From assembly GCA_001643675.2 (NCBI GenBank), contig LSRY02000035.1:186001-250000 (forward strand): a stretch of DNA of 64,000 nucleotides. The letters are read 5' to 3'. The notes below the pieces were generated by a model. That model was not told the origin of the DNA and made no database searches. It worked only from the letters and a program-made list of their open reading frames with translations. Origin of the DNA: Monocercomonoides exilis PA203. Its lineage: Eukaryota > Protista > Preaxostyla. The position numbers were made by a program, and so were the translations under genes. Shown here piece after piece: positions 22,841-61,500 of this stretch. Position 1 is the stretch's first letter. Every line of letters starts with the position of its first letter.

Positions 22841-25800
22841 ATGGATGCAAAGCCCGTTAGCTTGAATCTTTATGATTTATCTCATGGAATTGCAAAAGCA
22901 TTATCTCCATTTTTATGTGGCAAAACATTTGAAGGGATTTGGCATGTTGGAATAGTTGTTTTGTATGCTTTTTATTTTTCATTTGACTTTAATATTTGAA
23001 ATTGCAATTATAATTTTTTTACATTTTATGCATCAAATATGATTTAAATTCATATTTAGTGGAAATGAATACTACTACAGTGGAGGCATTATGAGGTATT
23101 TTTACAGATAAATAGAAACTTTTTCATAATAAAAAATTATTGAAATTCTTTTCAATATTAATTTTTTTAATCATAAAAAGAAATATCCCTGTATGCAAGC
23201 AATTATATCTTTAAACAATAAAATCTCCTATTTGTCAATTATCACGTTTTTAATCAAAAAGGGAAAAACTACAGCAGGAACTCCAGATAAAACAATACCG
23301 TATGCGGTTAATTATACTATTGAAAGATTTAATATTTTATATATTTTTTAATTTCTCATTCAGTTTTGGGCAAACGTATCTTTCTCAAGAAATTTTTGAA
23401 CAATTTTTAGAACAAAATAGCGATCAGTTTACTGCTGAAAATTACAAACTATTTGGAAACAATTGCATCGATTTCGCAGACACAGCAGTTAATTTTTTAA
23501 CAGGAAAACATCTTCCAACTGGTTTGAATTATTTTTTGTCTTCGATTATTTATTAACTTTTTTCAAAAGATCTTTTGGATTTAGGAAAAGAATTTTCATC
23601 AACAGCATTTGGGAAACAAATAAAACCATTTGTTGAAATGTTTTACGGAAATTGTGACCCGCTCAAATGTGGTTCGAAGGTGTGATATTTATTTTGAATT
23701 ATATATTTTTTTTTGAAGAGGAGTTTTATTTTCTGAAACAAAAATTCTCGTGCAATAATAACATCATCTACTTTTAAATTTCTTTTTTCCCCCCTTTATT
23801 AATCAACAAAACTTATATTTTCTTAGGCGTCAAGCTGTCCATCCAAGCCATGTGAACAATTTTCGAATCTATTTTCACAATGCCCTCAATTGGATATGAC
23901 TCACATGCTGCAGCTTCTTATTTCCCAAACAAAACTGCCAGATGGCATTTCTCCGACCTATGTAATAGATACATTCAATAAAATGGGCGGGGAGTCAATA
24001 TTGAAGAAGTACTTTGTATGTACTTATTTTATTAACCTTACAAACATAATCATCTCTAATTTCTTCTTCAAATTTCTTTTTCAAAAATAATAAAAATAAA
24101 ATAAATAAATAAAAATTAAATATATTTTGTTATCATAATTTCTCCGCACCCAAAACAATGATATTTCTCGCTCTAACTGCGCCGGAAAAGGGCTCCAAAG
24201 ATGCCTCAAGCAGCTCATCATCATCATCATCATCTTCTTCTTCTTCTTCTTCATCTTTCTCTCCTTCTTATTCTTCCTCTTCCTCCTCTTCCTCCTCCTC
24301 CTCCTCTTCAAATTCTTCTTCTTCTTCTTCTTCTTCTCCATCAAACACTCAACCTTCAGCTACTCTTGTCAACTATTGCTGCAACAATCCTTTCCCTCTC
24401 ACTCCAACTTCTCCTAATTCTTCTCCTTTCTCTTCATCATCATCATCATCATCATCTTCTTCTTCTTCTTCATCTTCAGCTTCATCAGCATCCGTCCAAT
24501 CATCTTCGCCCTTCCCATTTTGCTCTGATAAAAGCATCTTCCAGAAGACTGAGCCACACTCCTCTCTGACTCAGATGAATGCTCAACAAAAGACTCAATT
24601 TCAGTCATTTTCTCCTTTTCCACTGCCATTTTGCACACACACACAGAATGCTTCACCTTTCTCATTGTCATCATCATCATCATCATCATCATCATCATCA
24701 CAGCCATATCCCTCTTTCCCTCCTCATCTTCCTCCTTTTCCTCCTTTCCCTTCAACCACTTCTTCTCTAACTTCTCCTTTTGGCTCTTGCTTTTCATCAT
24801 CAACTCCTTCACCATCATCTTTTCCCTTCTCTTCTTCCTCTTCCTCATCATCATCATCTTCTTCTTCCCCTTTCTCTTCTTCCTCTTCCTCTTCAATGGA
24901 CATCGACAACGATACAGAGACAGATCCAGAGTTAACTTCTGCAATGGATGTGGAAGATTTAGCTGAGCGCTGCCCTCTCATCTCGTCGCCTAAGCCATAT
25001 CTGTTTGAGAACATCGACATCAACAGCATCCTCACCCGCCTCTTCGACAACGCTGTCATCTTCGAGGAGCAGGCGAAAGAACAACATGTTAGTCAACAAA
25101 GTCAACAAGCTCTTCAACAAACAACAAGTCAACAATATCCTCAACATTCTTCTTCTTCTTCTTCTTCTTCTTCTTTTGCTCCTTCTTTTACTCCTTCTTC
25201 ATCATTCCCTCAATCTTCTTCCTCTTCTCCTTCTCCTTCTCCTTCTCCTTCTCCTTTCTCTTTCCCCTCAAAAACAGGAACCACCACCCCATCTCTATCT
25301 GCTTCTGCACCTTCTCTTTCGTTTCCTCATCAACCACTTTTTCCTTCTCTTTCTTCTTCTTCCTCCTCCTCCCCTTCTTCTTCTTTCTCTTCTTCTTTCT
25401 CTTCTTCTTCCTTCCTCTCACGCACAACACCTGGACAAATGACATTTTCTCTTCCTCCGCCTCCTCCTCGTGCTCATTTGCTTCACACCCAGCAATCAAC
25501 AATATTCCCATTTACTACACAATCATTCGTACCTTATCAACCTCCTGCTTCTTCTTCTTCTTCTTCTTTTCCTTCTTCAACCCCAACCTCATCCACACCT
25601 CTAACCTCACCTTCATCTGACTCCCAATCCCACCAGGGCATCCTCTCCACCCGTGACAAGGAATTCCTCAACTCTTCCCCCGTCTGCTCTTTCTTCACCG
25701 CCGTCTGCACCGAAAGTGACAAAAGACCTCATCTTCAGCTGCCTCCTGGCCTTGTTGCCCTGCTCACCCGCTTCCGCTGCTGCTGGCCTTCGTCTCTGCT

Positions 25801-58508: not shown

Positions 58509-61500
58509 TCATTGCATACCCACTACAGCAGTAGCAGTAGCAGAGGCAGAAGAAGAAGGAGAAGGAGAGATGTGATGAGTAGATGCGACAGAACGGCGCA
58601 GTCTTTCTGAAGTGAGTGGAGTGCGAATGTGTTTTGTGGTTGAGGGAGAAGAAATAGAGGAGGAGGAGGAAGAGGGAAAAGAAGAAGATGAAGAAGAAGG
58701 AAAACAGGAGGAAGAAGAAGAAGGAGAAAGAAAAGAAGACGATGACGATGGAAGAAGAGAAGGAAGAGCAGATGGGTTTGGAGAAGGGAAAGAAGAGGAA
58801 GAAGAAGAAGAAGAAGAAGGGTTGGGTGAGTGATGCGAATGAAGAGCAGGGGAAAAGGAGGATTTATAAGCAGACTGCTGAAGATGAGAGAGAGAAGAGG
58901 AAGGAGTTGATAGAGAAGATAAGGAAGATGACAATGATAAGGAAGAGGAAGAGGAAGAGGAAGAGGAAGAAGAAGAAGAAGAAGAGGAGGAGGAGGAGGA
59001 AAATGAAGAAGAAGAAGGATTTGAAGATGAATAAGGAGAAGAAGATGATGATGAACCAAGATAAGGAGAAGAAGAAGAAGAAATAGAAGAAGAAGAAGAT
59101 GATGATGATGAATTAGAAGAAGAAGATGGAGTAACAGCTCTGAGAGAACGAAGTCCACTTCTTCCAAAAGAATTCGTTTTTGAGTGCTGACTGCGATGAA
59201 TTCTGCCTGAATGAGTGGAGAGAGGAGAATTAGAGGAATTTACAGGATTTGAAGGATTTGAAGGATTAGAGGGATTTTGAGTATTAATTTGATTAATTGG
59301 ATTAATTGTATTGGTTAAAGGAGAAGAAGAAGAAGAGGAAGAGGAAGAGGAAGAAGATGGTGAGGCTGTTGATGCAGAAGTTGATAACTGATTAAATGAT
59401 AAAGAAGATGGAAAAGAAGAAGAAGAGGAGGAGGAGGAGGAAGAAGAAGAAGAAGAAGAAGATGATGATGATGATGATGAAGAGAAAGGAGAAGAATTAG
59501 GAGAAGTTGGAGTGAGAGGGAAAGGATTGTTGCAGCAATAGTTGACAAGAGTAGCTGAAGGTTGAGTGTTTGATGGAGAAGAAGAAGAAGAAGAAGAAGA
59601 ATTTGAAGAGGAGGAGGAGGAGGAAGAGGAGGAAGAGGAAGAATAAGAAGGAGAGAAAGATGAAGAAGAAGAGGAAGAAGAAGAAGAATTAATATTTGAT
59701 GGCTGAGAGATGGCTAATGTTCTGAGAGCAGAAGATATTGCAGAGAATGAAGAAGAAGGAGAATTAGAAGAAGAGGAAGAGGAAGAAGAAGAATGAGTAG
59801 AGGAAAGAGAGAAAGAAATGGGATAAGAAGAAGAGGAAGAGGAAGAAGGAAAAGAGGAAAAGGAAGAAAAAGATGATGATGATGATGAAGTTAATGATGA
59901 ATTAGGAGCAATAGCAATAGAATGTGGAGAAGAAGAATGTGGAGAAGAAGAATGTGGAGAAGAAGAATGTGGAGAAGAAGCAATAGGAGAAGAAGAGGAA
60001 GAAGAGATTGGTGTGATATTTGCAGATAAATTTGGAGTGGGAACAAAAGAGGAGGAGGAGGAGGAGGAAGAAGAGGAAGAAGAAGAAGAAGACAATGAAG
60101 TTAAACCAGGTATGTTAGAAGAGATGGAAGAGAGAGAAGAAGAAGGAAAAGTTGATGATAAAGAAGAAGAGAATAAAGAAGAGGAAGAAGAAGAAGAAGA
60201 GGATGATGAAGAAGAAGAAGAGGATGATGATGAAGAGGATGATGAAGAAGGATTAAATGAAGAAGATGAGATAGAAGAAGGAGGAAATGAAGAAGAAGAA
60301 GAAGAACCAATACTTGACTCAGGAGTAAGGCAGTTATGAAGGATAGGGGTGAGGGTGATGGAGGTGATAGAGGTGATGTTTGTGTCAAGAAGAGGAGAAT
60401 TCATCAGAGAAGAGGAAGAATGGTTGGGGGAAGAGACAGAAAAGAGAGAGGAAGAAGAGGAAGAGAAAGAAGAGGAGGAAGTGGAGGAAGAATTTGAAGA
60501 AATATTAGAAATCTTATTTGGATTAATAGAAGAAGAAGAAGAAGGAGTAGAAGAAGAAGAAGAAGAAGAAGAAGAAGAAGAAGAAGAAGAAGAAGAAGAA
60601 GAAGAAGAAGAAGAAGAAGAAGAAGAATTAAAAGAAGAATTAGAAGAAGAAGCAGCAGTAGGCATTGTCATAGAGAGTGGAGAAAAAGCTTCCTTCTTCG
60701 CATTCGCACTCATATTCATACTCATATTCATCTTCTCCTTCACACCCACTCCAGTTCCCATCCCCATCCCTGCCCCACAACCCACCCCCACCCCTACATT
60801 CACAGACATTGAGCTTGATCTTCTTCTACTTCGAATTTTACTTCCATTTTTGATTATTGCTGCTGCTGCTGATGCTACTTTCTCCTCCTCCTCCTCCTCC
60901 TCCTCCTCCTCCTCCTCCTCCATTACTGCTACTACTAATACTGTTATAACCTCCAATGCTATTAATACTTATACCTCCAATATTACTATTATTACTATTA
61001 TTACTTATACTATTACTTGTGTTCTTACTATTAATGAAAGAACTGCCAATACCATTAATATTACTAACATTACATATTTTGCTTATATTACTAATACTCC
61101 TAATACTCCTAATACTGCTGCTGCTGCTGCTTCTATCTCTATTCTTCACTCTGCAACTGATGGGCTTCTCATTCAGCTGCTTCTCAAATGAGACAGAAAA
61201 GGGATTGATTGTGGAAGATGATGAAGATGAAGAGGAAGAAGAAGAAGATGATGAAGAAGAAGATAATGAAGTTGATCGAGATGAAGGAGAAACTTGTGAT
61301 GTTTGAGTCAGCTGTGAAACTTGTGTATTTTGTGATGATTGCAATTTCTGTGATGAATATGAAGATGGCTTAGCTGACTTAGCAGATTTCGATGTTTTTG
61401 ATGTCTTATTTGATTGAGATAATTGTGAATTCGAAATGTTCTGTATATTCATTGAATTTTGTGTATTTTGAATATTTTGTGTATTTTGTGTGTTTTGGAT

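Follow-up and report, generated by a model that had tools for sequence, protein, structure and literature searches.

Probable Microsatellite-Anchored Copying of a Short Coding Segment between Two Unrelated Poly-Serine Genes of Monocercomonoides exilis

Introduction

Intragenic repeats and low-complexity regions recombine in paralogous surface genes, as documented for the FLO genes of yeast and for Plasmodium. Simple repeats have also been implicated in events that join one gene to another. In yeast, gene conversion mended a break in a (GAA)100 repeat; its partner was an imperfect (GAA)n tract within a gene of a different chromosome (McGinty et al. 2017, strain 118, PMC5741057). Template switching between microsatellites, described in yeast as microhomology/microsatellite-induced replication (MMIR), makes duplications and chimeric genes (Payen et al. 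2008, PMC2518615). Here, we describe a stretch of 64,000 nucleotides from Monocercomonoides exilis PA203 (contig LSRY02000035.1, positions 186,001 to 250,000; hereafter "the window"), in which two genes rich in serine codons share a coding segment of 212 bp, which we call cassette 1. We argue that cassette 1 is probably the trace of a genuine, very recent event in which approximately 0.2–0.25 kb of coding DNA was copied non-allelically between unrelated poly-serine (poly-Ser) genes in opposite orientation, by microsatellite-anchored ectopic gene conversion or by templated insertion.

The likeness to the yeast GAA event lies in a non-allelic conversion junction within an intragenic tract of the GAA/TTC type, and in the copying of sequence adjacent to the donor repeat to a place elsewhere in the genome (PMC5741057). 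That event started from an engineered (GAA)100 repeat, had one junction in the repeat and the other in Ty elements, and copied approximately 17 kb. In contrast, both junctions described here fall in short natural runs of 3–8 units, the copied tract measures approximately 0.2 kb and it stands in frame in a coding region, with both copies known from assembled sequence alone. Our case resembles MMIR (PMC2518615) and the related pathways of break-induced replication mediated by microhomology (MMBIR) and fork stalling and template switching (FoSTeS; PMC8421209) in that a switch of template from one microsatellite or low-complexity tract to another can give rise to chimeric genes, and in that a duplicated flank is expected if the switching strand re-enters upstream of the place it left. 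However, the definition of MMIR refers to segmental duplications in the range of tens of kilobases, MMIR is Pol32-dependent and Rad52-independent in yeast (PMC2518615), and insertions made by MMBIR tend to be shorter, with templates close by (PMC8421209). With the FLO genes and the Plasmodium var genes (var: PMC3936766) our case has in common that coding repeats act as recombination substrates and that protein segments are reshuffled in frame. Those systems involve paralogues or repeats of one family, whereas the genes examined here are otherwise unrelated and their homology consists of a codon microsatellite only. We regard the case as a new natural example of an already known process and not as a new kind of process.

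Results

Identity and Extent of the Shared Segment

The window consists of AT-rich eukaryotic DNA in which trinucleotide runs of Ser codons are very numerous. The two copies of cassette 1 and their surroundings are defined by the following features:

24242..24453 (+): cassette 1, copy A, exact 212 bp, in frame in the linker of a PPPDE/DeSI-PUL gene (gene A)
24227..24477 (+): whole stretch of homology at A (251 bp), whose 6 mismatches all fall within trinucleotide runs
24338..24425 (+): non-repetitive core of 88 bp, encoding PSNTQ...NSSP, with 2 copies in the 82.3-Mb assembly
59461..59672 (-): cassette 1, copy B, exact 212 bp, in frame in the poly-Ser open reading frame (ORF) B1
59437..59687 (-): full homology tract at B, with (TCT)4TCC(TCT)3 as left flank and (TCA)6(TCT)7(TCC)5 as right flank

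Copy A is the exact reverse complement of copy B over 212 of 212 bases, although the two loci are 35 kb apart, and extension of this match by one base fails at both ends. The two copies show no differences at synonymous positions. An inverted identity that includes the synonymous codons had been reported in the initial annotation of this DNA, and our comparison confirmed it letter for letter. The same annotation held that both copies are in frame, and this was borne out: both are read in the Ser frame of their respective ORFs (24158-26686 (+) and 58509-60956 (-)). The similarity reaches somewhat beyond the exact match. A gapless alignment of 24227-24477 with 59687-59437 covers the full 251-bp tract, and every one of its mismatches falls in runs of TCA, TCT, or TCC. 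A repeat search of the window returned the same inverted pair (260 nt, 96%). The second-longest inverted exact match in the window measures 46 bp and is a low-complexity simple repeat. On the coding strand, the cassette tract is 83% pyrimidine.

The published assembly of M. exilis PA203 comprises 82.3 Mbp in 101 contigs. It was built from Oxford Nanopore (ONT) reads by means of Canu 1.8 and Nanopolish, with 2x300 MiSeq reads serving for ten rounds of Pilon (PMC8767320). The initial annotation had proposed a genome-wide search with the core of the cassette. In the whole assembly, the 88-bp core occurs exactly twice, both times in the window. A chance match as the origin of the identity was ruled out by this complex core.

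Host Genes

The two copies reside in the following genes and ORFs:

22841..26686 (+): gene A, with exon ORFs matching PPPDE/Peptidase_C97 and an 842-codon ORF with a PUL match; introns inferred
58509..60956 (-): poly-Ser ORF B1, 815 aa, approximately 48% Ser, no Pfam domain; holds cassette 1
60838..63972 (-): poly-Ser ORF B2, 1044 aa, no Pfam domain; holds cassette 2 and an older fragment (see below)

The halves of the PPPDE/Peptidase_C97 domain were found in ORFs 22841-22999 and 23302-23556 (+), and these two exon ORFs match PF05903 with 51.7 and 32.0 bits (cut-off: 29.2). The PUL domain (PF08324) scores 31.3 bits (cut-off: 25.5) in ORF 24158-26686 (+, 842 aa). With both domains above the Pfam gathering scores, gene A was rightly labeled a DeSI-PUL gene, and its PPPDE and PUL ORFs would be exons of one transcript. 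Positions 24071-24129 are AT-rich and probably intronic. The gene A region is contained in eight public sequencing runs, half of them DNA (4) and half RNA (4).

The partner of gene A had been described as a giant poly-Ser gene. A poly-Ser locus does carry the cassette, but it is made up of two partly overlapping ORFs in separate frames, and the cassette lies only in the downstream one. The overlap (60838-60956 (-)) runs across a GGA/GAG run and could reflect an assembly indel error, an intron, or two genes.

The earlier view that the two host genes are unrelated was upheld by two comparisons. BLASTP between the A and B proteins detected nothing in common beyond a 17-aa core, and dust-filtered blastn returned a single match, which covers the cassette only. 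We also searched for relatives of the encoded peptide. Among 1.84 billion representative proteins, the cassette peptide in its A context (161 aa) retrieved one unrelated protein, a result from which the proteins of this genome are likewise absent. A homologue search with the whole 842-aa ORF gave no match, the query being swamped by poly-Ser words, and searches centered on the cassette core among proteins of 60-190 aa and 463-1473 aa found nothing.

Anatomy of the Junctions

In gene A, the island of shared sequence is bordered by two composite microsatellites:

24215..24250 (+): left composite microsatellite (TCA)6(TCT)6 of gene A; exact identity with B starts from the fourth TCT unit
24434..24469 (+): right composite microsatellite (TCA)7(TCT)5 of gene A, nearly the same as its left counterpart

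The complete order in gene A is AGC AGC, (TCA)6, (TCT)6, TCA TCT, the island, (TCA)7, (TCT)5, and TCA TCT TCA GCT. Gene B reads AAT ATT AAT, (TCT)4 TCC (TCT)3, TCA TCT, the same island, (TCA)6, (TCT)7, (TCC)5, and (TCT)4. At both loci, the tract ends within TCT or (TCA)n(TCT)n runs, in Ser codon phase and in the same strand sense, and three of the four junction repeats have a length of 27-39 bp. The initial annotation had placed the ends of the identity inside such repeats. This description holds, but it needs refinement in detail: the left end corresponds to (TCT)6 in A and to (TCT)4TCC(TCT)3 in B, and the right end is a one-unit difference between (TCA)7 and (TCA)6.

We found no terminal inverted repeats (TIRs): when the two 50-nt ends of the cassette were compared, no inverted match exceeded 2 nt. 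The statement that the cassette comes with neither TIRs nor a target duplication stands as far as TIRs and a classical target-site duplication are concerned. It does not do justice to the insert in gene A, which has duplication-like flanks of composite repeats.

Cassette 1 also contains a type of interruption that is common in the Ser tracts of this window. With at least 4 Ser required on each side, AAT (Asn) is the commonest single-codon break, at 8 sites compared to 6 for Leu, 4 for Pro, and 4 for Phe:

14903, 15020, 24311, 37745, 48537, 59112, 59601, and 62374 (window positions): AAT interruptions of Ser tracts

Two changes separate the Asn codon AAT from TCT, and every such site makes an N-X-S sequon. 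That the Asn interruption recurs had been noticed before; as S4-N-S4 it occurs at the 8 listed sites, 7 of which are independent.

Further Copies from the Poly-Ser Locus

The poly-Ser locus shares two more segments with places outside the window:

63248..63547 (-): cassette 2, 300 bp shared with G000:C59:81327-81626, with a non-repetitive core of approximately 125 bp; includes (GAA/TCT)45 at 63248-63382
62353..63009 (-): older fragment, approximately 450-650 bp, shared with G000:C36:582641-583085

The two copies of cassette 2 are 99.7% identical and differ by 1 mismatch and one private 3-bp indel. In the window, cassette 2 is read in the frame of ORF B2 (1044 codons) and adjoins the run of approximately 45 GAA/TCT units. 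At C59, no long ORF covers the copy, and stop codons occur in the Ser frame just upstream. The left junction at C59 meets unique sequence with a microhomology of approximately 2 nt, and the right end enters (TCT)n(TCG)n. The older fragment is 87-88% identical to its C36 counterpart by blastn and 94% identical in aligned blocks, with internal Ser tracts that differ in length. TCT runs occur at both ends of the shared fragment. Approximately 210 bp between Ser tracts are present in the window copy and absent from C36. The fragment lies approximately 3 kb from an IFT140-like ORF. One poly-Ser locus of 5.5 kb has therefore three short segments in common with three unrelated places, at divergences of approximately 0%, 0.3%, and 6-12%. 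ORF B2 is the likely source of the copies of cassette 2 and of the older fragment.

Scope of the Genome-Wide Comparison

The queries for the genome-wide searches, in each of which approximately 40 candidates were scored so that copies may be missed, comprised the window except positions 20501-22799 and 26701-29499, plus four other poly-Ser-rich loci of 10 kb each. Window positions 1-20500, 29500-40000, and 40000-58400 gave no further short copy with at least 95% identity. We also compared 271 kb, including 20 of approximately 60 poly-Ser loci, all against all. Apart from transposon-like families and one segmental duplication, all high-complexity matches between loci in this set involve the poly-Ser locus described here. 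The initial annotation had suggested a general route for the spread of low-complexity tracts. Such generality was not shown: in searches that can miss cases, such copies were found only around this locus.

Discussion

Proposed Mechanism

Read in a shifted phase, the run (TCT)n is the GAA/TTC repeat. Homopurine-homopyrimidine mirror repeats of this kind form triplexes, stall replication forks, and break. The anatomy of the junctions suggests the following course of events. A broken end or a stalled nascent strand (3' end) in a Ser-codon run of the recipient would anneal to a Ser run at the donor locus. The strand would then copy through the non-repetitive core and rejoin its home locus through pairing within the next TCA/TCT run. 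As to the pathway, such a sequence of steps may correspond to ectopic gene conversion with synthesis-dependent annealing, or to a templated insertion with two switches of the MMIR/MMBIR type.

This mechanism would account for two properties of the copies. Since the only partner for a TCT strand is an AGA strand, and only in register modulo 3, and since TCT stands for Ser in both genes, the coding sense and the frame would be kept without further selection. The same pairing rule would explain why the copies lie in inverted chromosomal orientation. Microsatellites as homology arms had already been proposed in the initial annotation. The in-phase ends in Ser runs, the unrelated flanks, the lack of a transposon signature, the two further copies, and the yeast precedents all speak for that proposal, which is supported in part.

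The direction of copying is mildly in favor of B to A. This preference is based on the composite-repeat duplication that flanks A, on codon composition, and on B2, from which the other two copies probably derive. Near-identical flanks, (TCA)6(TCT)6 and (TCA)7(TCT)5, are what one would expect in a recipient if the switched strand re-annealed upstream of its departure point. As to codon composition, a codon-frequency model fits the cassette slightly better to the context of B1 than to the linker of A, by approximately 8 bits. Copying from A to B would need only TCT microhomology in B, and the preference for B to A is accordingly slight.

Weighing the Alternatives

Besides the slightness of this preference, several observations count against repeat-anchored copying of cassette 1. 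The homology available at the left junction is short, with 9-15 nt of exact match. When compared with the genome, the four other poly-Ser-rich 10-kb loci returned transposon-like families and low-complexity similarity of 70-89%, and, among the approximately 40 candidates scored per query, no short copy with at least 95% identity. Both near-identical cassettes touch one highly repetitive locus. Both loci of cassette 1 are known from this assembly alone; a look-up of contigs that encode ORF A returned none, and protein look-ups gave nothing usable either. Finally, the authors of the assembly describe the polishing of multi-copy regions as incomplete and uneven (PMC8767320).

Some of these points would fit a scenario in which the core exists at one locus only and was written into the other by Canu correction, Nanopolish, or Pilon through misplaced Ser-repeat reads. 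A perfect identity over 212 bp is what such an error would leave behind, and the assembly is of the type in which multi-copy regions are polished unevenly (PMC8767320). In addition, because both near-identical cassettes involve the same repetitive locus, a problem of assembly specific to this locus would look alike. We nevertheless consider such an artefact unlikely, although it deserves to be taken seriously. A read or local reassembly connecting the unique flank with the core has to include the junction, and with junction repeats as short as those described above, chimeras formed through the repeat would be unlikely. Each locus is within the span of long reads. The copies of cassette 2 retain their private 3-bp indel and their mismatch, and long open frames are maintained across the insert at both loci of cassette 1. 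Lastly, the C36 copy has the same anatomy at 6-12% divergence. Since a diverged copy cannot be a polishing artefact, a real process must have made this anatomy in this genome, at least at C36.

A second possibility is that the duplication is real but occurred without anchoring in repeats. In this case, a DNA or cDNA fragment would have been captured at a break by end joining or by RNA-templated repair, and the repeats at its ends would be coincidental. The left junction of cassette 2 at C59, which adjoins unique sequence, is consistent with such a capture, and the copied tracts are free of introns, which makes an RNA intermediate possible. However, cassette 1 begins and ends, at both loci, within TCT/TCA runs that are in phase, and such runs also hold both ends of the C36 fragment and one end of cassette 2. 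Neither filler DNA nor a trace of poly-A was observed. We judge this explanation to be improbable.

Common descent of the two genes, as old paralogues or by way of a shared old domain, with the cassette kept identical by selection or concerted evolution, is very improbable. Both proteins are Ser-rich and contain PFP-like motifs outside of the cassette, but nothing else aligns between A and B, every synonymous position is identical, and the peptide has no relatives among the 1.84 billion representative proteins (with the caveat on this genome's own proteins given above). This reading was rejected for want of similarity beyond the cassette. Equally improbable is a small mobile element or a transposon-captured fragment: the genome is repeat-rich, but the cassette has only two copies genome-wide, no TIR, no classical target-site duplication, and a tract that is pyrimidine-rich on one strand throughout, and we rejected the transposon on the grounds of copy number and missing TIR.

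A far broader version of repeat-anchored copying can be formulated, in which coding TCT microsatellites are portable recombination arms, locked in strand and frame, that repeatedly move peptide modules and Ser tracts between unrelated genes and into non-coding DNA. Repeat-anchored copying would then, together with slippage, feed a proteome-wide inflation of poly-Ser, with the locus at 58.5-64 kb as an active source. We consider this extension doubtful.

Other Features of the Window and Genome

Several observations concern other parts of the sequence. Window positions 1100-9200 belong to a multi-copy family of 2-6 kb, with copies on the same contig that are 90-98% identical and many elsewhere in the genome at 65-83%. 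A pure (AC) microsatellite of approximately 84 units occupies 51513-51680. Between the two copies of cassette 1, HEAT-repeat ORFs at 27414-29523 (-) with a PPP2R1A-like match probably encode the scaffold subunit of PP2A, and the downstream one (27414-28295 (-)) has a poly-Ser/Ala insertion near its start. Outside the window, G000:C62:195000-204999 and 212000-221999 form a near-identical segmental duplication, approximately 17 kb apart, with exact blocks of up to 2.4 kb and a total of more than 7 kb. Another low-complexity locus (G000:C62:392000-401999) contains an exact direct repeat of 192 bp (its positions 4604-4795 and 5128-5319, 524 bp apart).

Conclusions

If the second copy of cassette 1 were an artefact, it would exemplify a class of error in long-read assemblies polished with short reads, in which foreign islands are written between microsatellites. 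If both copies are real, as we think probable, they provide a natural, base-resolved case of repeat-anchored ectopic copying, a pathway seen until now mainly in engineered yeast, and one that placed a new segment of 70 residues in frame in an otherwise conserved enzyme-scaffold gene. The pairing of TCT runs would then give a simple reason why sense and frame are kept in transfers between poly-Ser genes. In a genome as rich in poly-Ser as that of M. exilis, this process would offer a way, open to testing, in which small islands of peptide and low-complexity tracts may spread.

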